Below, piece after piece: positions 11,181 to 45,905 of a stretch of DNA of 64,000 nt. Below the pieces are notes generated by a model. The model made no database searches, was not told the DNA's origin, and was given only the letters and a program-made list of their open reading frames with translations. The stretch lies in NCBI GenBank assembly GCA_964270895.1, contig OZ185439.1. One strand, given 5' to 3'. The position numbers were made by a program, and so were the translations under genes. The number at the start of each line of letters is the position of its first letter. Positions within the stretch are counted from its first letter, which is position 1. Source of the stretch: Podarcis filfolensis (taxonomy: Eukaryota).

Positions 11181-14100
11181 AAGAACTAACCATTCCTGTA
11201 GCACTTAAAATAGAAAAGAGGAAGAAGGACTCAGATTCATGTTGAATATAGTATTTGAATCATCAATAGAAAAATTAGGTGATCATGATGATGATTGCTG
11301 CAAGAATGGTTTCTAAGCATTTCTTAGCTATATAGGCTTTTTACTTACCTTGAGCAAATACTATTGCATGCATCTCTGTCCTTTCTGAAGCCCACACTCT
11401 GGTAGCAGCCATATGTATCTATGTTGACAGATCAATCGTAGATTATGGCATCCTGCATAGTGTTGTACAAATGTTAATTCTTCTTTGATGATCACTCATA
11501 GCCGAGTAAGATTGTCTTCCATTAATTTGGTCTTAACTGTGTGTCCGTGACTGTGGAGGCCAATTCTGGATCCACACGTCCTTCCACAGTGGAGACATAG
11601 GTTTCCGCGCAGGAGTTGATCACTGCGAAGATTTGCCAAACGTGCCTTCCTCTTAGCATGTTTTTCCCTTTCACCCTGAGTTTGTGCTTCTTCAAAGTCC
11701 ATGACGCCTTTGGTAAAGGCTATTCTCCAACTGGAGCACTCGCAGGCCAGTGTTTCCCAATTATCTGTGCTTATACTGCATTTTTTTTTTGTTTTGCCTT
11801 TAGAGCGTCTTTAAACCTCTTTTGTTGTCCACTGGCATTTTGTTTTCCATTCTTAAGTTGGGAATGGAGTAGTTGCTTTGAAAAATGATAATCAGGCATC
11901 CGAACAGCATGATCAGTCCAGTGAAGTTGATGTTTAAGAATCATTGTTTCTACACTGGTGATCTTTGCTTCTTCCAGTACACTGACATTAGTTCACCTGT
12001 CTTCCCTGTATAAATGTTATGGGAGTAGGAGCAGTATTTCTTAATTTTTCTTATTCATGAAAATAAATAATGCCAAATACTCTATTTTGAGAAATTCATG
12101 TATTGCAAGGTATTGCAAAGTATTGCAATACTACAAATTTTGAAAGCTTTTTCTTTGTGTGTTAGATAGAAAAAGAAGTTAGCGAGTCAATGATGAAATC
12201 CTTGAAATATTGTGATGTTGACACAGTGTCTGCACGGCAGCCCCTTTGCCAGTACCGGGCAGCTACAGTTCACCACAGGCTGGCTTCCATGTATCACAGC
12301 TGTTTGAGAAACCAGGTATTTGTCCAAAGAGAATCTACAATAATGTGTCTCTGATGGTGCACGCTTAATATATATTGATTAGTATATATCTCATATGTAA
12401 ACAGAGGGTCATAGTGTTTTATTTTTTAAGCATAGGTTTGTTACATTTTTTAAAGTGTGGATTTCTGACTTGTTGATTTATGGCCACATCGATGTCTGCA
12501 TGACACTATTGGCTTTTCCAGGTAGTTGGTAAACTTCTTTTATTCTCAGTAATTATGCTAGCCTTGATACATCAGCAGTAGCATCATTGTGTGGTACTCT
12601 GGCAGGAAGATGTTACTACATCCATTAGGTTTCTAAACATATTTAATAGCACATATATTTTATAAGAAGAATCTTGTAAAACAGTTACAAGGAGAAATTG
12701 ATTTCATATGCTTCCTGCTAAACATGTATTTTCTGTAAATATTTAAGTTATGTAGTAAGCATTGTTAAAGGGGGGATATGCTTTACCATAATACATAAAA
12801 CTATGCTTTTTATTCACCTGAACAAATTTCAAACAATTTTTTTTTGTCAAAGGTTGGTGATGAACATCAGCGGAAACAGCATAGAGTACTAGTAGATCTT
12901 CATTACAGTAAAGCTGTGAAGTTTTTTCACCTCCTGAAGGATGTGCCATGTGAGCTTCTTCGTGTACAGCTGGAAAGAGTAGCATTTGCAGAATTTCAGA
13001 TGGCAAGTAAGTTGAACAGTTGTTCTATTCTGAATAAATATTTTTCAAACTTTTTTTCAAAAATAATGATGAACAGCAGTTCCCTGGGATGAAACAGAAT
13101 TTGCTAATTGGTTCACTAGACTTGTCTTAAACTCAAAATATTATTAAAGAAAGAATTTTGTAATTGACAAGTACTTAGTATATTAATATCATTCTTATCT
13201 ACTTCTAGGTCAAAATAGCAGTGCTGGAAAACTAAAGACTTTGTCTGGGGCTTTGGATATAATGGTAAAGACCCAGTCTGTGTTTCAGCTCATCAGAAAG
13301 GAACTTGTTGCTGAATTTGAACAGGTAAACTACCTATTATTATTATTTTATAGATGTTTGTGGTTCTGTCATGTTACATGATTGTTTACACTGGTTTAGA
13401 ATTGAGTAAAATATATGTTTGAATGGTTGTGTTATACTTAATGTCTGTATTTTTAAATACCCCCCAGCAGCTTTTTTTAAATTTCCCTATAATTGCATAA
13501 TTACATACATGTGCTGATACTTAACCCTTTTTTATTGTTTGAGCAAATCTGTACACCACTTTTCAAAACCAAAAATTCTCCCCAAAGCAGCTCACAGTGT
13601 TCTTTTGTTAAGACTAGAGAACCATTTTCATAAGTGTCTTTTCTGTTTAGAGACTTGAGGATAACAAAAGCAATGTGGAAAGTGTGCCTGCTGAAGACTC
13701 ATCCACTAGCCTCAATAAGGAGGAAATTGTAAAACTCCTTGGTATATTTGAGTCTCGATTGTCTTTCCTCCTTCTTCAGTCCATCAAACTGCTTACATCA
13801 ACTAAAAGGAAAGTTGGGTAAGTCAGTACATGGTACTATTTCTCTTAACTTCTTTGCTTTGCATGAACTGCTTACATCAACTAAAAGGAAAGTTGGGTAA
13901 GTCAGTACATGGTACTATTTCTCTTAACTTCTTTGCTTTGCATGAATTGTTTTTTATTGAGCTTTGGATCCAAACTATATCATTTACAGAAAGAGAGCAG
14001 CAATAGCATTGTTCTGCAGAGTTCACTCAGTGCTATAGCAGATGAGGTTTGTAGTAGTACTACATAAACAGACCTATTTGGGGATTTAGTTTTTTGTGCA

Positions 14101-15629: not shown

Positions 15630-18600
15630 TATACAACAACAGCATGATCACTAGCACAGTTTTCAACAGGGCCACACCCCTGTCTTTTCCTGACAAAGCT
15701 TGTCATGCAGGGCAACCAAGCCAGTTTCAGCGCAGAACCCATGTCCAAACCCTGATTGAAATAAGAGCCAGACAATTACCATATTTTTCGCCCTATAGGA
15801 CGCACTTTTTCCCCTCCAAAAATGAAGGGGAAATCTGTGTGCGTCCTATGGGGCGAACGCAGGCTTTCGCTGAAGCTTGGAGAGCGAGAGGGGTCGGTGC
15901 GCACCGACCCCTCTCGCTCTCCAGGCTTCAGGAAGCTATCAGCAAGCCTGGGGAGCCCGCGGGAGTTCCTGCAGGGGTCCCTAGGCTGCGGATAGCAGCC
16001 TGCTTCCTGGAGCGCGGGGCGCGCTGAAAGCAGAGCGCCCGGCGCTTCGGGAAGACATCCGCAGCCTGCTTCCCGGAGCACGGGGCACGCTGGAAGCAGG
16101 GCGCCCGGCGCTTCGGGAAGACATCTGCAGCCTGCTGCATGGAGCACGGGGAGCGCTGAAGCAGAGCACCCCACGCTTAGGGCAGACATCGGGCAGCCCC
16201 ACAAGCTCGGGGGACTGCAGGGAGGCGGAGCGCCGCCATCCTGCTGTTCCCCGACCTGGTTTTGGGGGGGAAATAAAGGGAAAAAAAATTTCCTTTATTT
16301 CCCCCCAAAAAACTAGATGCGTCCTATGGGCCAGTGCGTCCTATGGGACGAAAAATACGGTAAGTCTCATCCAAAAGTAGCCACAGAGAATACTGCTCAA
16401 AGGATAGGTTTTGCCTGCATGCTATAGTTATCCTTTATTAACTGACATTTTATCATCTTCAGTCTCCTTCAGTGGGTATGATGTCATAGTCCTGCCTTTT
16501 TATAAATACAAATGAGTTTTTAGTTGTTACTCTATTTTAGTTTTATGTTTGTTTATGCTTACATCTTGTAAAAAAAGGAAATAATTAAAGTTCAATAAGT
16601 AATGATAAATGATGCTGTTGTATAGTACCCCTATATATCAACAAGAGCAAGGGCCACTGTAGTAATATTACGGCTGCCAGGGACTGCTGCTGCCTGGGGC
16701 TATGGTTGGATCTGAGTTTATGGTCACCACGTGGCTATGTGTCGGACGCGGGTGGCACTGTGGTCTAAACCACTGAGCCTCTTGGGCTTGCCGATTGGAA
16801 GGTCAGTGGTTCGAATCCCTGCGACGGGATGAGCTCCCGTTGCTCAGTCCCAGCTCCTGCCAACCTAGCAGTTCAAAAGCATGCCAGTGCAAGTAGATAA
16901 ATAGATACCGCTCCGGCGGGAAGGTAAACGGCGTTTCCATGCGCTGCTCTGATTTCAGTGTTCCATTGCGCCAGAGGCAGCTTAGTCATGCTGGCCACAT
17001 GACCTGGAAAAACTGTCTGCAGACAAACGCCGCCTCGGCCTGAAAGTAAGATGAAATGGGGCAGCCCCAGAGTCACCTTTGACAGGACTCAACCGTCCAG
17101 GTTTCCTTTACCTTTTACCTATGTGTCGGTATTGGGATATTACTTTGCACAAATAAAAGTAATACTGTGGCCTCGTAGGCTTGAGTTAGGCATTTTGTAG
17201 GGGAATCAGTTTAATATTGAATGTGGTGATCCAGTTCACACATGCACACAATGACTCAGGAGTTACTGATTTGCAGCTGAATGTATGAACAGACACCGTT
17301 TAAAGCATACGTCTAAAGTGCTGTGTGTGATTGTGTGCTCCTCCACAGTTGAATCACAAAGTCACGATGTGATCATTACAGCATGTTTTTAGTCAGTTAA
17401 TAAAAGAGAGGCATCCCTAATAGAAAAGAGGACACAAAGGGAAGTAGAACAGAATTGCTATAAAGGACAAAGCACATTGGTATATATAGTCACTGTGCCA
17501 TGTTGAATGTGTGCTCAGAAAGTTAAATTGCCTTAGAGAGCTAAGGTCACTTTCAACTCCATTGTGAGGCTTCTAATGGACCCTTTGAGTTAATAATTCT
17601 GTAGTGAAAGATCAGGAGTGTAAAGAGGTAAGCCTCGTCAGACATTTGATTGTGTTTTCTCCCCTGCTGCTAAATGTTTGGAACACCTGAAGCTTTTAAC
17701 TATGAGAATGTAACTGCAGACAAATTGGGGTGGGGAGGAGAGTGGTATCTCCAGAATGGGATGTTTAGCTAGGAGGCTTAGATATTGGGAACTACTAACC
17801 AGCTTTATGTATCATTTGGAATGCATATGCATCATCAGTGGAATATCAATGCATAAACCATCTATAGAGCAACGCATGGATAAAATAGCTGCTCTCTCAA
17901 TTATAAAATAACTGTGCTGTTTGGCAATGAAACAGCTTTAAAACACTTATTAAAAGAAATACTTAGTTCTGGATATTCTAATAGAATTCATTGGAATTTT
18001 AAATTTACTAACTGGTCTGTCTGCATAATAAATAAAGCTGTCAATTCTATTTGCCAAATGTTAGGAATTTAATTGCTTCTTGCTTTCTTGGATCAAAGTA
18101 TTTCCAGTGGCAATGCTTTCTCTGTATAGTTCTGGATAATGCCAGCTGTGGCAGTTGTTCATTTTTGAGCACATTTTATTAGTGTCTAAAAAGAGATGGA
18201 GAACTTGCACTAACAAAAGCAAAAGATCTAAGCTTATTCAACACACCTGAGTTCCTCTGACAATTAGCATTGTGATGAAGCATGATGAAAGAGAAAGGTT
18301 TTTCTAAAAAGTATTAATGTAGAGGTACACAGAGGCTGGTGCATACAATGAGCTATTGTGGTGAACCCAAGTAGTTGAAAAATAAGTTGCCATTAAAGGA
18401 GAATATAATAAATGGAAAGATAGATTCAGCCGTGACAAAAGTGAGATTCCATTAGTACTCGGAAAGTGTAAGTGTTGCACACTTTTGAGTTGCACTGATG
18501 AGAACATGAAAAACAGGATAAATGGTATTTGCTCCAGGTGGAAGGAGGGAAGTGGGGATGAATTGTGGTTCTGCTGTCTCCCAAGGGTTACTGCTCAGCT

Positions 18601-19153
18601 AAATTCCCCTCTATTTGCTCACAGTACAGGATCTTCCCTTGCACTTAAACCTACTTTCCTATGATAGAGGTAAGGGAAAGAATATTCTAATAAGCCCCTT
18701 GTGTCCGCATGATTAAGGAGGATGTGGTAGTACTAAAAGTCTAAAAGTGGATAGGTTTTGGTTCAACATACTGCAAGCAGAGTTCTGCCACCCCAAAGAA
18801 AGCTGCTCCTAGGGTAAAGGATGTGACACAAGAGGCTTCATTTGGCAGGGGGAATCTTCTCTTTGCACAAATAAAAGTGCATCTCACACACATTATTGCT
18901 CTGTTGGAGCCAAGCCACTATATGCAGACTTTGCTTATGCATCAACTACTAGATTAACCTAGTTCCCCCCCTTTCTTCCAGAGGTAACAGTGAAGAAGAA
19001 GAAATTCTTAAGACCAATAAGAATGTTTATTCACTTCTTTTGCGATCAGCAGCAAATAAAAACCTGACTCTGCTAGAAAGAACGGAAGTTGTTTTAAACT
19101 TATTGGAAAAGCTGACTCAGGATAATGAAGGCAATAATCTGGGAATTCAGTGA
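1..19153 (+). CDS. EDRF1: EDRF1 (erythroid differentiation regulatory factor 1), 3' part, 17 coding exons; 5' end lies outside the window
   Basis: Exons 1-38, 514-661, 1287-1395, 2668-2779, 3612-3872, 4427-4498, 4598-4748, 5373-5561, 6539-6739, 7883-8101, 9444-9667, 10971-11129, 12166-12315, 12853-13006, 13209-13324, 13651-13817, 18982-19153 join with consistent phases into one frame (2642 nt) ending at TGA 19151-19153. Peptides such as KYEMIKTEDIPNLENSNFSTKVIKDIAQNILSFLK and WDSVNWELSTTYFTMATL match recalled human EDRF1. Confidence 0.97.
293..447 (+). mobile_element. tRNA-Asn-derived SINE relic with a CR1-LINE-like tail
   Basis: 293-353 aligns to tRNA-Asn(GTT), anticodon at 319-321, with CpG-type decay. 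It is followed by gggttggactagatgacc...ttccaactctac...tgattct, typical of CR1 3' ends. Confidence 0.7.
514..661 (+). CDS. EDRF1: EDRF1 exon KYEMIK...HTYWLFK
   Basis: ttttag| acceptor, G|gtgagc donor. Confidence 0.95.
823..872 (+). repeat. (TTTC)n microsatellite, about 12 units
   Basis: Read directly. Confidence 0.95.
1287..1395 (+). CDS. EDRF1: EDRF1 exon ASGSDIVKLYDL...VAILLYK
   Basis: tttcag| acceptor, AA|gtaagt donor. Confidence 0.95.
2159..2422. mobile_element. Tc1/mariner-type MITE (family A)
   Basis: 22-bp TIR CAGTGGT(G/A)CCTCGCAAGACGAA with 1 mismatch, TA on both flanks, internal cgtcttgcgaag repeats. Confidence 0.9.
2668..2779 (+). CDS. EDRF1: EDRF1 exon VACNMMLKK...GRHPQ
   Basis: tcctag| acceptor, CAG|gtaaga donor. 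Confidence 0.95.
3612..3872 (+). CDS. EDRF1: EDRF1 exon IIASANYMLSELFQLDEP...THQIR
   Basis: aataaag| acceptor, CGT|gtaagt donor, 87 codons. Confidence 0.95.
4427..4498 (+). CDS. EDRF1: EDRF1 exon PSCAFPVCHDTEERCRLVLNYVLE
   Basis: gtgcag| acceptor, GAG|gtaagt donor. Confidence 0.95.
4598..4748 (+). CDS. EDRF1: EDRF1 exon GLKSVDSS...MALFLDK
   Basis: aaacag| acceptor, A|gtaagc donor; preceded by a 99-nt intron. Confidence 0.95.
5373..5561 (+). CDS. EDRF1: EDRF1 exon MGSFREVK...KLALQCH
   Basis: ttatag| acceptor, G|gtaagt donor. Confidence 0.95.
6097..6282. mobile_element. hAT (Charlie-like) MITE
   Basis: 14-bp imperfect TIRs (CTGGGGTAGTCAAC / CAGGGGATGTCAAC) and an exact 8-bp TSD CTCTAGCC at 6089-6096 and 6283-6290. 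Confidence 0.8.
6539..6739 (+). CDS. EDRF1: EDRF1 exon DTYCCLCTNML...RESSCQ
   Basis: aactag| acceptor, G|gtaatg donor. Confidence 0.95.
7883..8101 (+). CDS. EDRF1: EDRF1 exon VFSWATDLSTDL...LQSERG, ending at a GC donor
   Basis: ttctag| acceptor. Among nearby candidates, the donor that keeps phase 1 with the next exon is G|gcaagt at 8102. Confidence 0.88.
8132..8197 (+). repeat. Compound (AC)8 ... (GA)22 microsatellite
   Basis: Read directly. Confidence 0.95.
9444..9667 (+). CDS. EDRF1: EDRF1 exon ENKTVSAAEQQLWKK...LYYNK
   Basis: ttctag| acceptor, AAG|gtaaca donor. Confidence 0.95.
9865..10090 (+). mobile_element. Tc1/mariner-type MITE (family B, copy 1)
   Basis: TIR CAGTGGTACC(T/C)(T/C)GGGTTA, TA flanks; four more copies in the window. 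Confidence 0.92.
10971..11129 (+). CDS. EDRF1: EDRF1 exon AVDYYLKALRSL...KAQEQ
   Basis: ctgtag| acceptor, CAG|gtaact donor. Confidence 0.95.
11135..11176 (+). repeat. (TG)21 microsatellite starting at intron position +6
   Basis: Read directly. Confidence 0.95.
11478..11832 (-). mobile_element. RTE-clade LINE 3' fragment
   Basis: Minus-strand translation GQQKRFKDALK...NWETLACECSSWR...CLHCGRTCGSRIGLHSH resembles the RTE ORF C-terminal C2H2-type motif; short AAG-type tail. Confidence 0.8.
12166..12315 (+). CDS. EDRF1: EDRF1 exon IEKEVSESMMKSL...CLRNQ
   Basis: tgttag| acceptor, CAG|gtattt donor. Confidence 0.95.
12853..13006 (+). CDS. EDRF1: EDRF1 exon VGDEHQRKQ...AEFQMA
   Basis: tcaaag| acceptor, A|gtaagt donor. 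Confidence 0.95.
13209..13324 (+). CDS. EDRF1: EDRF1 exon SQNSSAGKLKTL...AEFEQ
   Basis: ttctag| acceptor, CAG|gtaaac donor. Confidence 0.95.
13651..13817 (+). CDS. EDRF1: EDRF1 penultimate exon RLEDNK...FESRLSFLLLQSIKLLTSTKRKVG
   Basis: gtttag| acceptor, GG|gtaagt donor; the donor is duplicated 79 nt downstream. Confidence 0.92.
13787..13946 (+). repeat. Exact 79-bp tandem duplication spanning an EDRF1 exon end and splice donor
   Basis: aactgcttacatca...ctttgcatg at 13787-13865 repeated at 13866-13944. Confidence 0.95.
14208..14440. mobile_element. hAT-type MITE
   Basis: Ends CAGGGC... and ...cgcctg, with an exact 8-bp TSD GTGTATTG at 14200-14207 and 14441-14448. Confidence 0.8.
15557..15627 (+). 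repeat. Compound (TC)21(AC)14 microsatellite
   Basis: Read directly. Confidence 0.95.
15779..16360. mobile_element. Tc1/mariner (Tigger/pogo-like) non-autonomous element (family C) with an internal palindrome and 66-bp tandem repeats
   Basis: 27-bp TIR CC(A/G)TATTTTTCG...ATAGGACGCAC with 3 mismatches, TA flanks, GC-rich interior. Confidence 0.88.
16744..17118 (+). mobile_element. Sauria SINE (Squam1-like), full length
   Basis: tRNA-like head with gttcgaatcc B box, (tttacc)n tail, and direct repeat ctatgtgtcgg at 16735-16745 and 17119-17129; homologous to the copy at 51778. Confidence 0.88.
18982..19153 (+). CDS. EDRF1: EDRF1 terminal coding exon GNSEEEEILKTNKNVYSLLLRSAANKNLTLLER...GIQ*
   Basis: ctttcttccag| acceptor, phase 2 matches. 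Similar to recalled human ILKTNKHIYSQLLRATANKTATLLER. Confidence 0.92.
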
Positions 19154-19284
19154 CCCACCTTAATGCTTGTACATGTTGCAACCATTGAATCAGTGCCTTG
19201 CTCAAAAAGGGATTTGTGGTTCTCTTCCATAGATTGCCCGCTTTATTTATATTGTTACATATTTATAAGATTGTACAGTTGGAA

Positions 19285-19290
19285 AATAAA
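19285..19290 (+). terminator. Candidate proximal polyA signal (AATAAA) of EDRF1; a distal candidate lies at 19838-19843
   Basis: AATAAA about 130 nt after the stop codon; actual use unknown. Confidence 0.45.
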
Positions 19291-19469
19291 ACTATTGTTA
19301 ACCTTTGAATGCTGTTATGAATTAGCATATATTTTTTGTTTTTACACTTCTGGGTTTGTTTTGAAATGCTCAAAGAGAAATGTACAGTTAGTTTATTTAA
19401 TCTGAACTGTAATGGGCTTTGTATTGTTGCAAAGCAGAATGGTTTTGCTAGCACTCTACTCTGTTTCAC

Positions 19470-19607
19470 CAGGGGTGGGGAACATGGGCCCTACAGCTGT
19501 TGCTGGACTCCCAACCCTCGGCATTTGTGGCCACTGGCTGCATTGGCTGGGCCTGATGGGAACTGGAGTCCTGTCACATCTCAAAGGCCACAGATTCCCC
19601 ACCCTTG
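19470..19607. mobile_element. hAT-type palindromic MITE
   Basis: caggggtggggaac ... attccccacccttg inverted ends; degenerate 8-bp flanks tgtttcac / tgttacag. Confidence 0.7.
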
Positions 19608-22600
19608 TGTTACAGCAAAAGTCCCCTTTGCTGTTTCTTTCCACTATGCATTCTCTGCTAAGCAAAACGTCCGTGAAAGGCACATGCCAGCAGTATTAAT
19701 TAAAACCATAACATTACAATTACAGATTCCTCCAAAAATGTGCCTTTTGCACTTCAATGCAAACACTTAAAATAGACATTACTCTGAGAAATGAAACGGG
19801 CTTGTTTGTACCTCACTGTCACTTTTTCAGAAATGTGAATAAACAGTTGTATATTGAAGAAATTTTATTAAAAATTTATCCCAGTGGTCATCATTTCATT
19901 TCTGTTGTCTCATTTTCCTCCCAGAAAACCTCAAAGGTATCAGTGCATACAAAGGTTGCTGTGTTGGTTCTTTTGTTTGTTCTTTTGTAGAGGTTTGTAA
20001 CACCATCAGGGAACACAAGTTTCTTTTAAAAAGAAATATTGTTCCTGCATTGCACTATAATCTCATTCTGCAAATGGCTACCATTTATTCCATTTAACCA
20101 AATATTCCGAGTAACTTGAAAGATTGCTCATTCTTGCTTTTCCACAGAATCACTTTATGTTGCCTACTGTGTCTTCTCTTGTGTATGACTGACAGGCTAT
20201 ATTATCTTGTATTATTTAGTAGGCATCATATGCAATGTTCAAAATTGTGACCCTATGGTGTCTTTGCATGTTCTAATTCGGCCCAGATACTCTCTGCATG
20301 ATATGACTGAGCTACCAACCAATAGTTCTCTCATCTTATTCTGAGTCATTTTGACTCATTGGCTTGGATCCTAACTTTTATTTTGCTCTTGGGGTTTGGG
20401 GAACCCTTGAGCTGTGTGGAGAGCTGCAGGCAGCCAAGCGAACATGGTTTATTCTATAAAGGCTACACTATGTTGGTTAAATGCAACCTGATTCTGTAAG
20501 CATTTTCTACATAGTAGCTATATAGATATTTCAGTGAATTATTATTTTTTTAATTTGCAGCTCCAAAAAGATGTATAGTCCTTATCTGGACCACCTGGAG
20601 TGCATTCTAAGCATCACTTCCTTTGGCAGTTTGATATGGAGTTGTTCCCAGCTGCAGAGAGCATTTTGTGCAATGGAACAGTTCTTTTCCTTTCTTTTGT
20701 CCCCCATATACCCATGGGATATGCTGTGGGCTAATTTGTCTGGGCCTGCGGTGGGAGGGCATAATTGTCCCAAAGCAGGTAGGGGAATCTTGCACAAGAT
20801 TCTTCTGTCCAATATCTGGTGATTCACCTCCACCCTGTTCTGGATAACACAGCCCACAATGTTTGGTAGGTCCTGCTGAGTATCTAGAGACTTTTTGTGG
20901 GGGGTGGGGGTGGCGAGAAGGAAAGGTAGATCAAATGAGCTACCTTAACTTGTGCTTCTACGATGTTCAATACATCTCATGAGCACAATAACTTTGCTAC
21001 AGGTAAGCTTGGAGAATACTTGTGGATTTTCCTCTAATAATTGGAATTTACTTCTTTTAAAAAGATGTTAAATGAAAGGCCTCTTCGTAAGTTGCACCAA
21101 TAGATTGTATTACCACCAATGTAAATAATGTGGGATAACTAGCTTCGTATAACCAATATGCTTAAGTCTAATTAATGCATGAAGGGGTTAAAACCAGAGT
21201 AAGCTCTCCTGCCTTGCTACTTGAAACTTGGGAGGGACTAGCTTATCAAGCCTTTGTTCCAAGATGCTCAGGATGTAAAGAGATCCAAGCTGGTTGTTCC
21301 AAGCTCAGATTTCATGGCTCTAACTTTCTTGAGTTCATATACCAATAATTTAGGAACTTTCACCGATGTAACTAAACCAAGTTTTACTGTCTGTGCAACC
21401 TTTTCTGGCTGCTGTATGGAAAAGCACACGAACCTGACCCATGGGGAGTTTGTAAGTAAACCATTTTTAACTTAACCAAATGTGTGCCTTTTCTATGCTA
21501 ATGGAAGAGGGAAGTTTTGAAACTCACAAGGATGCATTTTAAAGGTCTAGCAGCCTGTATTTCCACACACTAATTTTCTGCGTATGTGGTGATTTTAAAA
21601 CCTCTTTGGGGGTTTTGCCCCAAACCTGGATGTTAGCATCCAGGAATTCTCTTTTCTATATGCCTATTTTATTTTTTCCTTGCCACCAACAAATAAAAGT
21701 ACTTTACATTATCCTCTTAATGAGAGTGATATTTTTTATATTCAGCATTTTATGTCAAGCAGAGTAATAGTGATTGTTTATATGTATGAAATATCTTCCA
21801 ACTATTGTAGATAACTTTATTATTTTGGCTATTGTCTGGAAAGAGATTCTGCTGGAGTTTTTAGAGTGAATTAAGCAACAGCCACTTAGCTACTGGATGT
21901 TTTGTTGCATGCTGACATTCTTTTATGAGGAAGCCAACTGTTTGGTTTAACTTGTGCTATCTACATAACAACCATTGCCTATATCCTTTTGTGCTTCACC
22001 TATTTAAAGTTTAAAGAGAACCAAAGTAAACCTACATACCGTATTAACCATTTCCAGTCAGCTGGATCCAGGGGGTGCTTAGAGTAACAATGGCATATAT
22101 AACTTGTTCAAGAAGCCATTTTAACTTGCAAAAGATGCTGATAAATATTGTAGCTCATTTTTTTCAGGCCTTATATTTGATCAGTTTGCATGGAATCTGT
22201 CTTGCAAAACAGTTTACCCCCACTCTGAATGTAGTACTTTAAAAGTTTGCATTGCTTCCTTATAAAAGCGTTTAGAAAAGTTGAGTGAAGGCAGAACGGT
22301 CCAGAACAGAGATCAGCTTTCCAAATGCTAGGCAAACAGCTTGCTGTAAAACTGAGTTTCTTGCTAAGGGGGAAATTGGCAGGTCTGCATCTCTTCTTTC
22401 CTACTCCCTACTGTAGATTCAAGGCTGCAGCTTATTGCTTTGGGGCTCCCATGTGAAGAGGAGCTAAGGCTTTGTTGCCATGAAGATTTATATATATATA
22501 TATAAAAAATCAAACACTTTAACAATTGGGCAGATAACAGGGATTGAATTCATTCTACCTAGCCTGACTCTAGCAGTCTAGATCATAGAGTTATGCTGAC

Positions 22601-24029
22601 CACTGACTGCAAAACAGTTGAATTGCTTTAGTGCCTATAAACTCTGTCCCTTATGTTTTATAAGCAGCAATTCTCTCCCCTCTAGTCTCAGTTAATGCAC
22701 TTTGGCATCAGAGAGAAATTACACAGCAGGAACTGTCATTACCCAAGCCAGAGCACTAAATAACCGGTGTAATGTACCTTTTCTTTTGCTCTGTACTGGG
22801 GTAGTCAGGCATCATGCCTTCTGTCTGAGCAAATTAGGAGGTGATACTGATGTGTAGGCTCGATGCTCTTCTATGGCCTCATTCTGTGTCGTAAGACAGC
22901 ATTTGTTTCTCCTTTACATTCTAAGCATTATTTATTAAGAGACATTATGTGAGCTAGCCTAAATGAATCAGTGCATTTTCTTTTAACTTTTCTTTCTGTT
23001 AGATGAGTCCTGTTAAATCTCTTTTAATTAGTAATGATGGCTCTACATTTTGCTATCCAGCATATAGACAACAATCCCGGAGGCATAATAAAATCCACAA
23101 TATTCAAGTACACAGATTATCTAGTATTGTTGCCTTTGGTAGAGAGCTGATCATGTTAGACAGGACAAGGTTTTAGAATGCTGTAGCAGCCTTCTACTAA
23201 TAACATTTCACCACGAGCCACCGACAAAATGTTGTAATTCCAACACAGAACTGAACAGTAAATGGCTGCAAAGTAGATGGAGGCCCCTTTCCATTTCTTC
23301 AGGCATCTGAAGTGGCTTTGAAAGGGACATCCATGCTTTCATTCTTTTCCGTCTACATGAATATGTTAGTAAGGCAGTAAATGGAGTAGTTTGTTACAAC
23401 TCCCTTCCCCAGTGGTGGTGCAGCTGTTGTCCCAAGTTCTCCCTATGCTTTATGAAAACAAAAAGACCCTAGCTGCATCAGACCAGAGGTCCACCTGTAC
23501 TTTGCACAGTACAGCTCACAAACATGGCTTAAGAGTTGATAATCCTCTCTTGCTATATTATCCTACATCTGTGGCAAATTTGGAGGCAATTTTGTGCAAA
23601 ACAGTATTCCACAGTGGTGGCTGATGCTCATTGGGATTGCTAGAGAAGAATGGAGGCAGGTAAAGCCAAAGCCGACTAATTCTAGTCTTGTCTCCATCTT
23701 CTGTTCTGAATTTCACAATAGCAACATGAGAATCAAGAGGAGGCAACAGTCACTGCCACCCAATGGGCTGCTTGTTACGGAAGAAGGCAGACAGAGGTTG
23801 GTATGGCAGTGCGCCATTTGCCCTAGTGAACAAGATTCCACTGCTATTCTGTATCACCATCATGACCAAGAACCAGCGAGAGATATTGTCCATGATTCTG
23901 AACTGGTCTAAGTACAACAGAAAATAAAATGGAGAGAGAAATGCAAAGTTTACAGGGAGGGTTTCCCTGCTACCCGTCTTAACATTTTGACAGCTCACAC
24001 AGTAGGACTTTGTAGGTTGATCTGAATGC

Positions 24030-24370
24030 CTGGCAGTCTCATAGGGGTGTAGTTGGTCCTTCAGATAACATGATCTCAGAACTTTGAGGGCTTTAAAAGT
24101 TCAAAACTGAAACTTTAAATGGACCTGGAAATGAAACTGGCAAAAAGTACAGAATTGGCTCCCACAAGCATTATTGCTGCTGCATTCTGTACCAATGGAA
24201 TTTTCTTAACTGAAAGGTAACCACACACGGAGAGCATTATTCTAATTCATTGTGGATGTAACCAGTGCATGAGTCACTATGGCAAGGTCTCATTTCACCA
24301 GATAGATTCCAGCCAAACTGAAGCTGTGGCCCCTATTGCAAAATCAATTTAACTGGGTGACCAGTTCTGG
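24030..24370 (-). mobile_element. L2 LINE ORF2 C-terminal relic
   Basis: Minus strand reads HALVTS..N*NNAL.VWLP then, after a frameshift, LVQNAAAIMLVG; resembles L2 HALVTSRLDYCNALYVGLP...LVQNAAARLL. Confidence 0.7.
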
Positions 24371-25560
24371 CATTGCAAGTGAGGAAAGGAAAAACCTCTA
24401 CCAACTACTTTTACGGCAGTAGAACCTCTGAAGACTACTGTTCTTGGCAATCTTGAGATCACTTTAGGAAATTAATGTTTTTAACAATTCTAGACTTTTG
24501 AATTGTTTGTTTTTAAATTGTGGAAGTGTTTGCCACCCTGGCCTTCTTCAATAAAACATACAAACGGTCTGAATTCACAAGGTTAGGTGCCTATGTTTTT
24601 CAAGGTATAACCAGAACATCAAGAATATTTTGTAACTTGTTTATTGGAATTGTGACTTGGAAATCATTCTTTCCCTCTTTCCATGGATGATGCAAAACAT
24701 GATTTAAACAGGACCACACAATGTGCTTGTATAAACTGAGATACTTGATATACAGAACGCTTGTCAGAAGCCACTAATTTGAAATGAACATATTCACAGC
24801 CTATGAGCAAATGTCCCATTTATATGCTATTATTCACAGTAGCCGAGAACGTACAATTATGAAAATCTGCATAAGGTGTAAAGTACATAGGAGGCAACCA
24901 ATACACCACCCCAAGTGTATGGTGGAGTGTCTCTGGAAGTCTGCTTTTAGTCAATGGGCAGATTTCATGTAAAGTGTCCAATCAGCACGAGGGTTTTCAC
25001 TCATGCAATTGAGCTTTCTTTTTTCTCTTTCCTCTGCCCCCCACCTGAAATTGGCTCAGGGGCGTCAGAAGAATTCCCAGAACAACACATAGGGGATTAG
25101 TCTGTCTGGCAGGTTGCAACGCTTGCACTGACCATAACCCGACACTGAAATCTACCCTGGATTTCTGAAGGGAACTTAGGTGCAATGAAAACTGCATCTG
25201 GATTATAGCAACATTGCTTACATTAAATATGAGACTTAATTAGAAGGCAACAAAACACCTAATGCTTCATTATTACTATTTCTAAAACTTAAAAAATATA
25301 AGCTCACATTTATCGGGGTAAGATTAGACAAGGTGTTAACTGTGCTAGACAGCTACTATTACTGTCCATTTTAATTCGTATTTAGCACCACTGTTAATAC
25401 AGTATAAAGGCATACATTAAGTGTCTTACAGGCCAGAGCTGAATGTGACTTCTAATCCCAATGAATGTTACACCCACTGACAATAAGTTTTCATTTTAGA
25501 GATGTCATTTCTGCAAAATAGCATAATATCAAATACACATAGCCTTAAAATCCATCAGTT

Positions 25561-25686
25561 CTACAACTGGAGACTCCTTTTAATGCAAGCAGTGAGATCC
25601 TCTGGAGTTGGGCTACTGGCAATGCAGCTCACTGAGACGCCTTGAGCAGTTATAGCTTCAGCTGTTGTTGGACCTATAGCAGCAAA
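25561..25686 (-). CDS. UROS: UROS terminal coding exon [16 protein letters not shown]...KRSLQL*
   Basis: tcatttcag acceptor; TAG at 25561-25563. Confidence 0.95.
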
Positions 25687-28600
25687 CTGAAATGACACTC
25701 GTGTTAACACAGTAGAGACCGATACAGTATTGACTTCAGCTCTTGCTATGTCAGCCAGCTGCCTGATAACATTTCCCCATGTAGATCAACATTCTAGCCT
25801 TTCAGAAATGTATTCCAAACTCATGTATGTATGTGGTTTTGGATCAAGGGCTAAAATGCATCCCTTTTCATTGGTCTTCAAGTTGCAATAAAGGTCTATT
25901 GAACTTGTTTTCTCATACCAATGAAGTTTGGACTAATAAATGTCAACCTACCCTCTTTAACTTACGTCTGGTACCAATAGCCAGCCTTGTAATTACATAC
26001 CAAGCAAGTTCGTACTACTAGTTCAAAATTCAAGTAGGGCAAGAAATTAAGCCCCATCTTAATATATGCTGTGTTCATGCTCAAACTATAGAATGGCTTT
26101 GCTCACATGTCGTATTACCCTTCTTTAATGGTTTAATGTGAACATGCTAGTCTCTCCTGTTTTGCTCCTCCTTGTTGGACCCACTTGGTTTAGCATTACA
26201 TCCAGACCAGATATCATGGTTTGTCCTGCTCCAAGTGTAAACTATTACTAGACTGGGATTGTGGTGCAGCTGGACAACTCTTTGCACACCGCCCCCACTA
26301 TTTATCCCAGGGTGAAAGCAGCTATTGATGCCAATAGTGTTTTCAGGATGGTGACTTTCATCAGAACTGCAACATGGGTGGAAAAATATGATCTCCCTCT
26401 CTCTTTGTGTTGTGGCCTCAATACAAATCTCCACCCCCACTCGGGTGGTAAAATATAAACACATGCGAATATGCACTCAATGTCACAAGTGGTTGATAAT
26501 TCATATTCTGCAAACAGTGAAGTGAAGAAATAAATCAAGTGAAATGGTGTTGCCTTCCAATGGCGTGCATGCCTTTGCTTCTTCTTTTCCCTGCAGTTAT
26601 TCCATAATGGTTGTATATCAAACTCTCATTACTGTTTGGTTGCTAACACACTGAAACATCCATAGATTAATGTGATTCTGAGTCAGTAAATAAGTTCTGT
26701 ATCCCTCGACACTATAGGAAAAACATGTCCCCCAATTCATAAAGTGTCTTTCTACAAAGGATATTAAGGCAATTGACAGTGAACAGTTGCCACCCACAGC
26801 ACAAAGTTAAGAGACAGAAAAGCTTAAAGCAAAATGATAATCAGGAATCCAAGACCCTTGAATCAGAATTCTGTTTGAACCAAATGCAATATTACCTCTC
26901 CAACAGATTTGTACCTTAATTTGGGAAAAGAGATCACCAGCCAATTCCTGAATCTGCTTCATACAATATTTGACGCCAGATGGACTGAAAAACGTGATAC
27001 TTGCAGGAATACCCTGTGGAAAAATATTTAAAAGAGAAGGAGAGCTGATATTTCTTCCTGGTTGAATCTCTTGATGTATGTTCAACCAGGGTTGTTTTTT
27101 TGTTTTGTATTCACCATGGCCACTTTGCAGCTTAAAAGTCGGTTCTGAAGTTGCTGCAGTAGATATTACAGCTAGCCGAGGGCTCTTACCACATGTACAT
27201 ATAGCAACACAACATCACATTTCATTTGCTGTTTTGCCCAAGAATGCATGAAGTTTGATTTTTCCAGTTTGATTGGGAGGAGGTCACTAGAAGACCAGGC
27301 TAATGTTTCCTGAAAGAAGTCCTTTTTATTCCTGTCTACAAACAGTTCCTCATAGTAACATAGTTACTTGAAGTTTTGCTCATGAACCTCACATTTCTAA
27401 TTGTAATAGGCAACTGTGTAGCTTGGATTCTACAGTCAAGATCCCACAGCCAATATAACCTCTCCTTTCTAATGCACTTTTAAACAAACAAAAATCCTTC
27501 AAGGGCTTCCTTCTAAACTTACTCTGGGCTACTAATCCAACACCAAGTATATGTTCCACAAATGACCATGCAGAGTCAAGCATTCAGTTGTGTGGAAGAC
27601 AGCCTGCTGTGGCATAAAAAATATACGTGAGCTAGAGAACTAATCTCAACAATGGCATTAGAGGAAGATCTCTCCTAAAAGTATTCAGCATGGAAAAAAC
27701 AGCATCCCTTCAAAATTCCTACTTCCCACTGAGGGGCACGGGCGGAGATGGTGCAAATGAACAACCTGTGTTAATCCTTTACATTCAACAGTGTGAATTC
27801 CCTTAGAACAATAAATGCTTTACTGCAGAAAGGAAAAAAAAGATTTTTCTACAAAAAAGTTTTAGGAAGTACAAGATGAAGCCAATAAGATATAACCTCA
27901 AGTCCACCTAATTGGCAGCAGCCCCATTTATTTTAGTAAAGGTAAAGGGACCCCTGACCATTAGGTCCAGTTGTGGCCAACTCTGGGGTTGCGGCGCTCA
28001 TCTCGCTTTATTGGTCGAGGGAGCCGGCGTACAGCTTCTGGGTCATGTGGCCAGCATGACCACTTTATTTTAGTACTTTACTTTAGTAGGACCCTTCTAA
28101 TTCTAGATCACTGCCATAACCCCTAAAAAACCCCCATGAAGCTGGGAACAAAACACACAAGTTACCTGGCAGGTAAGATTATTTGATTTCTTTCTGTGAG
28201 TGCATCTAAAATAGGTTGAACATCTCAATTGCAGGAGGAAAAACGATATATGTCTATACCATAAGTGTGGTAAGAAATGTTCAAGGATTATATAACATAA
28301 AACCATCAATAGGTTTAAGAGCTATTGTGTTTCGTATCACAAAAATGTCTGGGGACCACTTCCATTTTTATCAAACAAATGCATTATATCTAAGATGACT
28401 AAAAGCACAGCCAGAGGAATTCTGCCTCCACAGCTAGGGGAGGGGGCTGGAGAAATTGCTTAAGCAGCTTGCTGGTTGTCCTTGGCAATAGTAACTTAAC
28501 AGACAACCAAGGGAACGTAATAAAATTTATCATAATGTAGATAAATGCTCACTTGGGAAGTGAGATACCTGTTGTGAGAAATAATTCCTCAAGGAGTCTT

Positions 28601-31600
28601 GAAGATTAAGATGTTGAGTAGTTTGGTAAACAGTAAGGCCCTCTAGTGCAATGCCTGCAACAAAAACAGTGAAATATATTAGTGATTAAGCTTATCGGTT
28701 TCAGTTAAATCAAAACACAAACATTTAAACTGATGTCATACTGAGCATTAATACTAACATGGATGGGTATCTAGCATATGCTGCCCCAAATCTAAAAAAA
28801 CAACCACCTCTGTGTTTTGACAACAAAATTATTTGGGGAAAAAATATTTTAAAGGTTTATTGTCATTTACAATAAACATGCAAAGACTTGCTAATCAAAG
28901 CATATGAGATAAACCGAACAAAAATCCCACACAACACTATGTACAAGTCTGGTGTAGTGGTTAGGAGAGGTGGACTTGTAATCTGGTGAATTGCATTTGC
29001 TTCCCCACTCCTCCACATGCAGCTGCTGGGTGACCTTGGGCTAGTCACACTTCTCTGAAGTCTCTCAGCCTCACTCACCTCACAGAGTGTTTGTTGTGGG
29101 GGAGGAAGGGAAAGGAGATTGTTAGCCGCTTTGAGACTCCTTAGGGTAGTGATAAAGCGGGATATCAAATCCAAACTCCTCCTCTTCTTCTACTTGAATA
29201 TTTTTCAAGGGCTAAAAAATGCAGGCACTGTAACTGAATATGCTATGCCAAAATAGCATGCTGAGTCATCATCACCAACCCCAGGAACCATCTTAATCGA
29301 TTGTTGTGCTTGCCAGAGAAATGGGTGAGGATGACTTATTGTATATGGGGATGATGTATAGGTTCACTTACGCACCACTCTTCTGACTTCAACAAACATT
29401 GGGCACACACTGAGACTTTGCAGGCTGCATTAGGATGAACTTGCCCCTTGGACTGATCCAGGTTGTCACAGAAAGAGAATCAACATAAACTACCCAGTAG
29501 CACCACTGAGATGGCAATGTTTGATGGAGCCCACAAGTATGCAAAGCCGGTTATTGGTCTGATAATCGGCACTGTCTCTCATGCACTCTGCGTTCCTCAA
29601 ATTGAAGGACCAAACTTCAAAAATACTTTAAATGATTTAAATCAAACCTTTCCCACTGAGCATGGTTGGAAGTGTTTCCCTTTTGAGAGCCCCGCAAGGA
29701 AAAAACAAAGGCAATGAATTGGGTGACTCCCCTGTTTGAAAAAATAAAAATATATTTAATTCATGAGGTCATTTTAAGCACAAAGTCCCCTAAATAATAC
29801 TTTTAAACCATCACACTACAAACACACAGTGAAAAGTATGATATGTGTTACTTGCACCCTTAAGACTACTGAAAATAAAGTTCAAGGCACATAGGTGTTT
29901 CACATACAGCAGAAGCTCTATAGCCCTTTTTTATATTTTTAAAAAACAGGTTTCCATTGCCAAGGCATGGATATTTTGGCTAAAGAGTTCTGGCAAAAAG
30001 ATAAATTGCCTTGCTATGCTCCATTTCTTTGCTATTCAACAGAGAGCTACCAAGCACAATCCTTCCAATCATCTTAATAAGTTTTCTCCCTCCCCTTCAG
30101 TCACTTGGCATTCCTCATACTTGTTTAGCTATTTAAAGACTCATTTCAGCTGAATAAATTTGCTGTCTGACATTCCACACAAAGGAAAGGTCAAGGCTGT
30201 CGCAAGAAGGAACAGGGTGGTTTGAAAAGATGTTCCAGATACAAGTTGTCTTATTGGGGATATATAACACACCCATTTTCTGGTCTTTAAAATGGACATT
30301 CACTTTTTTGAACCCCTACAAGTTCTCTTAGGGGAACCATCACACAAATGTCCTCAGACAGACCTTCTTCTTGGAGAACAGTCATCCATCCTTGTATACA
30401 TTCATACAACATATTCCTACTAATATGTTTTTGTAAATCAATTTATGGAATTCACTGTTGCAAGATGTGCTGGTAGTCATTATCTTAGCTGATTCTAGAA
30501 ATGGATTAAGACACATTCATGGAAAGGAAGTCTATTATTTGGCCACAAAAACTATACCTCTGAATATCAGATGCTGGGGACAAAGAGAAGAGGGCTGTTG
30601 CCCTCATATCCTGCTTCCCAGAAGAATCTGTATGACCACTGTTGGAAATTCAATTCTAGACTACATGCAGCAGGGCTCTTATACAGTCGTACCTCGGATA
30701 TTGAACAGAATCCATTCCGGAAGTCCATTTGACTTCCGAAACATTTGACTTCCAAAATGTGGCTTCTGTTTGGCTGCAAGAAGCTCCTGCAGCCAATCGG
30801 AAGCCACGGAAGCACCGTCGGACATTCAGCTTCCAACTGAAGGAACACTCACTTCCGGTTTTCAATCATTCAAGCTGACTGTATTCTTATAATGGTCTGG
30901 TGTTTTCAAGAGGCTCATAGTTCACACTCCATTACCCAACCACAAGCAGAGAGATTATCCTGGAGCAGAGGAAGAGTGTGGTCCTTTGCCTAATGTGTAC
31001 AGCTTGCTTCTTCAGAACTGATTTAGGAAACACCAGGCAGAAATCACATGGCTCCTACTGAAACCTCATCTCTATTCTACTCATTCTTCTTAAAGGCACT
31101 GTTGTGCCCCCCAGCCCCACCCCCCAGCACTAGATAGATAATATAGATTTATGTATATATTTCTGTTGCGTGCTTGCACATTCAGGATCAGTGCATACAC
31201 ATATTAAGAAAACATGTGTTGCACTTCTGGAGAAATTGGAGGGGTAAAACAATTTAAAATTCTCTGGTCCTACTATTTCCAGAGGATTTGCTTTTTTCCA
31301 AATTATTTTTAAACCGGATAAAAGAAAACATGGTTTGGGGTGTTTATTTTAAATGCTACAAGTACATTCTTGCCTCTTTTTCTTAAGCTCCTGAGTTTCC
31401 TCCAGGGTGAAGAAAACAGGCTCATTCCAATAAAATCAAGCTAAGGCACCTTATTAGGAGTCTGCACAGATTTATCAGAATAACCTAATTGCAAACTGAA
31501 GTTTTATTAGGCACCACAGATATGTTAGTAATAAATTACAGGAAGCAACAAAGGGCTTGAGACAGAATACAGAGCGTTATTTTGAGAGATAAAAGCAAAA

Positions 31601-43982: not shown

Positions 43983-45169
43983 CGGTAGTATTGTTGGTCA
44001 ACATCCTATGCACAATCTCAGGAACAGGACTTTATGTTGCTTTTGGCAAAGCTCCACTACAAAATATGAGTGTTAAATCAAAGGCTCGTGTAACTGCAGA
44101 GCATAGGATAATTGGCACAAACACATCTTTAGGCAGGCTTGCGAAAAACTCCTCTCTGAAATGCTGGAGAGCGGCTGTCTGTCAATCTTCCTCTGCGCCA
44201 CCATTGGCTAAGGTCATGATACACACTAGTATGTACATATGCAAGTACATACTATACAGTATTCCGATGCTAGTTGACCACTGGAAGCCAAAACTCTGCA
44301 TCAATTTACGTACACAGCAGTTTCATCCATTATCTACCATCAGTAAATTCTACAGTGGGGTTGGCTAGCCTTTTCTGGCCAGGGACCACATGCCAGCAAT
44401 GAATGTGGCAAAAGCAACAAGCCACTGACAAAATAAATTGCACATGGAAGACTAAAAACATTGGAAGACAAGTTTAAAAATCTCTTTCAAATGGGTACAT
44501 GAACTTCAGCTTTCTTATTTATTTATTGAGGAAAGCAAAGGGCACAGTGCTGTCATTTCTAAACTGCCTTATGTGTACAGCTGTCAACCAAACAGAAGGG
44601 AGATATCTGGACCTTGGAAGTCCTGCTTAGAAAGAACAGTTATTAACATTCTTGCAAGTTACCGTAGCTGAATACTGCTCAGCAGCCAAGCCCCATGGAG
44701 CAGTATTTCCACCATGAGTGCATGCGCAAGGACCCTGAATGGCTGTGGCTAGCATCTTATGTCTGCATCTGGGACTTTTAAGCATGTAAAGCAGCATAGT
44801 ATGCGGCAATTTTTATTTCAGAAATAAAACTGTGGTACAGCAGAGCAAGGACATAGTACCTTCAGTTACTGCACAGCAGGGCCGATGAAGTTCTTTCCTG
44901 GGGCACTATTTGCCATTTGTCTACATGCCAAACAAATAAGCCTCTCTCAAAGAGAAATAAGCTAAGCAGAGGAATAGGTAGGTTACATTAGCATGCATGG
45001 CCAAGCTGCCACTTTTATTTCGAAAAATTCCTAAGTCCTTTTGTTATGACCAACCAAAATGTCACAAAATAGAGAGCAAGCTTTCAAGTTCACCAGAACT
45101 CTTCATCAGGCTGGATGTTAAGCAAAGTGCTGGAGGCGGGGCAAGCAGAGAATATGTATGTTAGAAATA

Positions 45170-45217
<48 letters not shown>
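45170..45217 (+). repeat. (AAT)16 microsatellite at the edge of the CpG island
   Basis: Read directly. Confidence 0.95.
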
Positions 45218-45219
<2 letters not shown>

Positions 45220-45641
45220 AAAGCTCGCTTGTAACCAAAAGCATATCTTCCTTGATCAAAACATCGTGTTATCGTATAAGCCAAACGGATTGCGGACTGA
45301 AGTTGCTCCCTGACTATTAATCAACAGGAAAGAGGGGGAAGCACTCTGCACATGGCCAGAAGCTCTCGTTTCAGTTACATATTTACCCCAGCGCTCAGCC
45401 CTGGCACTGGGAGCAATGCGTTTCTTCTTCCCAGGCAGGGCTTGTCCCCTGAAACTGCTGCCTTGGTGCCTAAACCTCCACCGCTGGCGACCCCCGACGT
45501 CCCCAGGGGAACTCCTTTTCCGAGGAAGGGGCGGAGGGCTAACCTTGTTCACGACCCTCGCAGCCCCAGATTTCCCGCCTTCCCCGCAGGCCACTCCAGG
45601 CGGCACCGGGGCCCCCCGCCCACCTACGCGCCCGCGCTCAC

Positions 45642-45720
45642 CAGCGCCAAGAGCGCGGCCTTCCTTCCCGGCTTCCGTGGCCGCGCGGCCTTCCTTCCCG
45701 GCTCGCGGGCGCAGGCGCAC
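45642..45720 (-). other. UROS: Probable non-coding exon 1 of UROS (housekeeping transcript); 5' boundary unknown
   Basis: Strong minus-strand donor CTG|gtgagc at 45641-45636 inside the CpG island. Human UROS has a non-coding exon 1 head-to-head with BCCIP. Weaker alternative donors lie at 45543 and 45386. Confidence 0.55.
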
Positions 45721-45746
45721 AAAGGAGGGGAGGAGAGCTCGGCAGC

Positions 45747-45905
45747 ATGGCCTCTCGGGCTAAGCGGAGGCGAGCGGTAGGGCCGCCCGAGTGCCGGGAG
45801 GAGGAAGGCGGCGGCGGCGGCGACACGGAGGACGACTCCTCGGAGGAGTCGGGCAGCGACGAAGACAGTGATGATGACGACGAGGAGGAGGAAGAGCTTA
45901 ACCAG
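45747..45905 (+). CDS. BCCIP: BCCIP exon 1 MASRAKRRRAVG...EEELNQ
   Basis: ATG in GCAGCATGG context; donor gtaaaa. Confidence 0.93.

Follow-up and report, generated by a model that had tools for sequence, protein, structure and literature searches.

MMP21 is absent from the EDRF1-UROS spacer of the lizard Podarcis filfolensis, a probable remnant of its decayed locus that retains a conserved non-coding element

The loss of MMP21 with the rest of the flow-sensing module in animals without a ciliated left-right organiser is a well-known case in which genes were eliminated along with a developmental mechanism. Here, we analyzed a stretch of 64,000 nucleotides from the lacertid lizard Podarcis filfolensis (contig OZ185439.1 of assembly GCA_964270895.1), hereafter called the window, in which EDRF1 and UROS are neighbors that face each other tail to tail. 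An earlier note on this stretch had claimed that only 6.4 kb separates the two stop codons, and that this interval is the vacated locus of MMP21. The distance proved to be exactly 6407 bp (positions 19154-25560), and the genes on both sides of it were confirmed by Pfam. Three features define the locus:

18983-19153, plus strand: terminal coding exon of EDRF1, ending in the stop codon TGA (19151-19153); Pfam TPR_EDRF1, positions 347-394 of 395, E 3.5e-8
19154-25560, no strand: tail-to-tail spacer between EDRF1 and UROS, 6407 bp, the probable vacated MMP21 locus; MMP21 domains, motifs and exon similarity absent, collinear with Podarcis raffonei
25561-25686, minus strand: terminal coding exon of UROS, ending in the stop codon TAG (25563-25561); Pfam HEM4, positions 196-230 of 231, E 1.8e-6, and translation

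The upstream EDRF1 exons in the window matched Pfam EDRF1_N and TPR_EDRF1. Overall, the EDRF1 exons of the window were 98-100% identical to EDRF1 of P. raffonei, the last one being 100% identical to that protein (P0238) over 56 amino acids (aa). Beyond UROS, the next gene in the window is BCCIP, which was identified by Pfam on the plus strand.

To compare the locus among amniotes, we started from an EDRF1 exon, moved to full-length EDRF1 and its amniote orthologues, and took the corresponding loci with 10-kb flanks, from which the MMP21 queries were also obtained by synteny. The sample comprised P. raffonei, the leopard gecko, two turtles (Dermochelys and Emydura), two crocodilians (Gavialis and Alligator), two birds (Rhea and Balearica), the mouse and the bat Phyllostomus. 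It should be noted that the sample was without monotremes and marsupials, and that the EDRF1 matches listed included none from tuatara, amphibians or fish. Both mammals carry an intact MMP21 with PG_binding_1, Peptidase_M10 and Hemopexin domains on the strand opposite to EDRF1: the mouse protein has 568 aa and its gene lies 2.9 kb downstream of EDRF1, and the bat protein has 579 aa with its gene 2.5 kb downstream. The lizard site directly past EDRF1 corresponds to this position, but it is empty.

The emptiness of the spacer was observed by four kinds of search. First, a motif search found neither the PRCG cysteine switch nor the HExxHxxGxxH zinc motif in any frame of 19154-25560. Second, 192 stop-to-stop pieces of at least 22 aa (99 from the minus strand and 93 from the plus strand) were scanned against Pfam at a cut-off of E<=10, and none of them matched Peptidase_M10, Hemopexin or PG_binding_1. 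Third, the seven MMP21 exons of mouse and bat, each represented by the stop-free piece that contains it, were run by tblastn, exon by exon and unspliced. As a positive control, the mouse pieces retrieved all seven bat MMP21 exons (E 6e-61 to 2e-21). Against the lizard spacer, the mouse and bat pieces gave chance, non-collinear matches only (best E 0.13), with no similarity to exon 2, which encodes the pro-domain, or to exons 3 and 4, which encode the catalytic domain; against the whole window, the mouse pieces gave scattered non-collinear matches only (best E 0.03). Finally, when the flanks of the four turtles and crocodilians, which bear MMP21 relics (see below), were used as nhmmer queries, nothing was found in the spacer at the places expected for the hemopexin exons (5-7). 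These flanks aligned with just two stretches of the spacer, namely the start of the EDRF1 3' untranslated region (UTR; ∼300 nt) and a block at ∼22590-22852. MMP21 is thus absent from the EDRF1-UROS spacer of P. filfolensis. The earlier note had reported no PRCG, no HExxHxxGxxH and no hemopexin-like exon here, and each of these absences held up; the tblastn check that it had suggested for this interval, here with the mouse and bat exons, likewise returned no MMP21 remnant.

A different picture was obtained for turtles and crocodilians. No gene was called within 10 kb past EDRF1 in Dermochelys, Emydura, Gavialis or Alligator. In all four species, however, exon relics of MMP21 were found there by tblastn, on the minus strand, in gene order and with mammalian spacing:

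L003:61075-61260, 65169-65249 and 66506-66574, minus strand: MMP21 relics of the leatherback turtle (Dermochelys)
L008:58117-58260 and 60908-61075, minus strand: MMP21 relics of the side-necked turtle (Emydura)
L004:72790-72840 and 74548-74607, minus strand: MMP21 relics of the gharial (Gavialis)
L007:57370-57420 and 59100-59135, minus strand: MMP21 relics of the alligator

Relics of exons 4 and 5 were present in all four species, those of exon 5 with E-values of 7e-6 and 2.5e-8 in the turtles and with in-frame stops. A relic of exon 7 was found in both turtles (E 2e-5 and 1.5e-5), and its splice acceptor is still legible. For the crocodilians we claim relics of exons 5 and 4 only; candidate matches to exons 6 and 7 at ∼2.0 and 3.4 kb were weak and out of order, gave no exon 7 alignment and were dropped. 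Several lesions are shared. The codon for the catalytic Glu of HExxH, GAA or GAG in mammals, reads TCT, TCT, TCG or TTG in the four reptiles, the Glu codon of the IPQEPAFELDW stretch reads TAG in all of them, and exon 5 lacks 2 nt at two shared places in all four. Since two turtles and two crocodilians have these lesions in common, MMP21 was already a pseudogene in their common ancestor. It was thus inactivated before the turtle-crocodilian split and then decayed in place, instead of being deleted. The common ancestor of the two groups lived more than ∼250 million years ago.

Among the other reptiles, UROS is called directly after EDRF1 in P. raffonei, where the spacer measures 6431 bp, and the spacer of the leopard gecko measures 6.6 kb. 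Those of the birds measure 4.5 kb in Balearica (L010:37106-41619) and 7.9 kb in Rhea (L006:37889-45781). No MMP21 exon relics could be identified in the P. raffonei, gecko, Rhea or Balearica spacers, and neither bird spacer aligned anywhere with that of the lizard, 3'UTR included.

The second block that was shared with turtles and crocodilians is a conserved non-coding element:

22590-22852, no strand: core of the conserved non-coding element, 263 nt, within the lacertid-gecko alignable block 21761-22907; BLAST and nhmmer

Identity of the core to the window was 98.9% in P. raffonei, 88.5% in the gecko, 81.5% in Dermochelys, 82.6% in Emydura, 82.4% in Gavialis and 82.4% in Alligator, with BLAST E-values from 6e-108 to 2e-55 across species. 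Among squamates, turtles and crocodilians, identity ranged from 79 to 89% over ∼263 nt with unalignable flanks, and 154 of 266 core columns were invariant in the seven species. For comparison, the last coding exon of EDRF1 has only 73-74% nucleotide identity between the lizard and turtles or crocodilians, against 81.5-82.6% for the core. In turtles and crocodilians, the element is flanked by the relics of exon 5 and exon 4, which places it in the old intron 4 of MMP21. The lizard element is orthologous to this intronic sequence, and the lizard spacer is therefore anchored to the former interior of the gene. The element is separated from the EDRF1 stop by 3.4 kb in squamates versus 5.7-6.8 kb in turtles and crocodilians.

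With regard to the nature of the element, 1-nt indels separate the species, no frame is open throughout the core, and the core matched neither Pfam (six-frame pieces, E<=10) nor Rfam. A structured-RNA reading was also tried and rejected: RNAalifold on the seven species gave a covariation term of +0.72, with compensatory change in 2 of 57 pairs. On the basis of these results, the element is not protein-coding, nor is it a structured RNA. It contains many TAAT/ATTA cores, as read from the alignment, and resembles a cis-regulatory module. A profile of the element found no match in the spacers of Rhea and Balearica or in the EDRF1 loci of mouse and bat, flanks included; the element is therefore not pan-vertebrate, and it may have arisen after MMP21 died.

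The remaining contents of the spacer are as follows:

19154-19933, plus strand: proximal EDRF1 3'UTR; nhmmer against gecko, turtles and crocodilians, extent inferred
19470-19607, no strand: miniature inverted-repeat transposable element (MITE), 138 bp, with 23-nt terminal inverted repeats (19470-19492 and 19585-19607, 78% complementary)
23543-23911, plus strand: open frame of 122 codons, whose stop is the end of the annotated EDRF1 coding range of P. raffonei
25175-25560, minus strand: probable UROS 3'UTR; nhmmer against the gecko spacer E 2.9e-9, extent inferred

The earlier note had placed both 3'UTRs in the spacer, and conserved blocks do adjoin both stop codons. On the EDRF1 side, these are 19165-19457 and 19621-19933, with AATAAA at 19285 and 19838; on the UROS side, the block 25175-25411 is conserved with the gecko and has TTTAAT at 25370. 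Lacertid-gecko conserved blocks found by nhmmer also include 20160-20355 and the block 21761-22907 around the element. The MITE that the earlier note had seen is real, with terminal inverted repeats and an empty gecko site. The gecko alignment runs uninterrupted across this site, and the MITE is therefore a lineage-specific insertion into the conserved EDRF1 3'UTR, made in the lacertid lineage. Its 8-bp flanks match at six of eight positions, which is the sole basis for the label hAT. As to the L2 relic also mentioned there, no reverse-transcriptase-like piece turned up in the Pfam scans of spacer pieces, which were not accompanied by a repeat search directed at L2. The open frame at 23543-23911 has a counterpart in P. 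raffonei (L002:43861-44229), where the EDRF1 range ends at 44229 with TAA, and the two lizards differ by one aa. It had no Pfam match and could not be aligned to the gecko; the shared end point suggests a predicted alternative terminal exon of EDRF1. No Rfam family was found in 19000-25700 at E<=1, and at E<=1e-3 nothing in the spacer resembled any other part of the window.

Several observations concern the neighboring DNA. Open-frame pieces recur at ∼13730-14060, after the penultimate EDRF1 exon. The region at ∼44000-46300 between the divergent UROS and BCCIP is GC-rich (0.495 over 44001-46000) and resembles a shared CpG-island promoter; the first BCCIP coding exon lies near 45.7 kb of the window, and a long AAT microsatellite near 45.2 kb. 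Upstream of EDRF1, a gene with an HDNR domain, which we take to be TEX36-like from human gene order, was present in lizard (L002:1-8452), turtle (L008:1-1995) and bird (L010:1668-6818). Thus, apart from the missing MMP21, gene order in the wider region has been preserved.

Taken together, these data are best explained if the spacer is the remnant of the MMP21 locus after early inactivation in sauropsids, decay in place, erasure of the exons in squamates and retention of the element, a reading to which we assign a probability of about 0.88. MMP21 would have been inactivated early in sauropsid evolution; by the time of the turtle-crocodilian ancestor, it was a pseudogene, and it decayed where it stood. 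Slow evolution in turtles and crocodilians would have left legible exon relics, spaced as in mammals. Every MMP21 exon of squamates would have been erased by substitution and net deletion, and roughly half of the EDRF1-side DNA would have been lost. What is left in the lacertid would then be the 3'UTRs of EDRF1 and UROS, lineage-specific insertions such as the MITE, and one constrained element of 263 nt. The earlier note's identification of a vacated MMP21 locus is thus supported by mouse and bat synteny, by the relics in turtles and crocodilians, and by the element shared with the old intron 4. Its further claim, that the interval could be used to date and characterise the loss, is unsupported for the lizard interval itself, which has no datable relic; the answer came from turtles and crocodilians.

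It should be noted that several points weigh against this reading. The stop-to-stop pieces of at least 22 aa represent only ∼60% of the six frames. Our own search was limited to the 64-kb window, so that a copy of MMP21 could lie elsewhere in the genome. In mouse and bat, UROS lies beyond the 10-kb flank, and the position between EDRF1 and UROS was established from the EDRF1 side only. The alignment of the decayed exon 4 is uncertain between the zinc motif and the TAG, as is the original frame of the TAG. Finally, there is no lepidosaur relic, and the lepidosaur loss cannot be linked to the lesions of turtles and crocodilians; that both were the same event is nevertheless what we infer.

Other explanations of the empty site could also be considered. 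A single clean deletion of the whole MMP21 gene in the squamate lineage, with no decay in place, would account for the lack of any exon relic in the lacertid, P. raffonei and gecko spacers, and it would be in line with the element lying closer to the EDRF1 stop in squamates. However, the element is orthologous to DNA between the exon-5 and exon-4 relics, so that part of the gene interior survives with losses on both sides of it, which is not the outcome of one whole-gene deletion. Moreover, turtles and crocodilians show a pseudogene decaying in place, and we regard a clean deletion as unlikely. MMP21 might also persist elsewhere in the lizard genome, translocated or retrocopied, with the ancestral site alone being empty, which a search confined to the window would have missed. 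On the other hand, according to published genome-wide surveys, reptile genomes have lost Mmp21, a chameleon genome study reports having confirmed its absence, and in the sister turtle and crocodilian lineage the gene died at the ancestral site; such a copy is thus very improbable, and MMP21 is most probably absent from the rest of the lizard genome as well. The weakest explanation, a short spacer produced by assembly collapse or a hidden gap that conceals MMP21, which the earlier note had itself named as a danger to its claim, had no evidence in its favor and can be dismissed as next to impossible, since the window, spacer included, contains no N, positions 16361-30000 align with the independent P. 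raffonei assembly in a single block (13640 versus 13637 bp, 97.3% identity), and the gecko spacer is of similar size, its copy of the conserved element being just as far from EDRF1.

We consider there to be an even chance that the element is a functional cis-regulatory module in the former intron 4, one that squamates, turtles and crocodilians have kept for ∼280 million years as its host decayed, and that was deleted in birds. If this is true, a regulatory element would explain why that part of the dead locus persists, and it would mark how the locus eroded lineage by lineage.

The loss of MMP21 in reptiles has already been published, and our lizard result confirms this known loss. A preprint on the veiled chameleon genome (10.1101/2024.09.03.611012) reported that Mmp21 was lost from reptiles and that analysis of the genomic regions confirmed the absence of Mmp21 and of the genes lost along with it (see below). 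A review and a later paper credit two articles in Nat Genet with the finding, Szenker-Ravi et al. 2022 and Guimier et al. 2015, and a citing paper quotes the latter as describing the orthologs of birds, reptiles and Cetartiodactyla as 'absent or degenerating'. In view of this wording, the relics in turtles and crocodilians may already be known, although a full-text literature search found no report joining MMP21, pseudogene and turtle. The conserved element may be the only item here that is new.

Three known systems are suitable for comparison. The closest is the loss of MMP21 with DAND5, PKD1L1, CIROP and C1orf127 in sauropsids and cetartiodactyls, with which our case shares the gene, the clade and an empty syntenic site in a squamate. 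It differs in the species, a lacertid, and thereby adds one more squamate to the known co-elimination of MMP21; it also adds the anatomy of the spacer, the lesions of turtles and crocodilians, and the element in intron 4. What the comparison contributes to this system is that the gene died by inactivation and in-place decay before the turtle-crocodilian split, not by deletion, and that in non-avian reptiles the former gene body is marked by a non-coding element under strong constraint. The second system is the unitary pseudogene, an example being MMP21 in Cetartiodactyla. Turtles and crocodilians offer a classical case, in which collinear relics occupy the ancestral site and carry stops and frameshifts, and in which the catalytic residue is destroyed. 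The class requires recognisable exon relics; the lizard window has none, having decayed beyond recognition as a pseudogene, and therefore cannot be placed in it. The third system comprises conserved elements that lie inside bystander genes or outlive them. The lizard element differs from these in being absent from the bird, mouse and bat loci searched. Like them, it sits in the intron of a gene that it did not necessarily serve and was kept during the decay of that gene, and if it is regulatory, it would illustrate cleanly how an element can survive its host gene.

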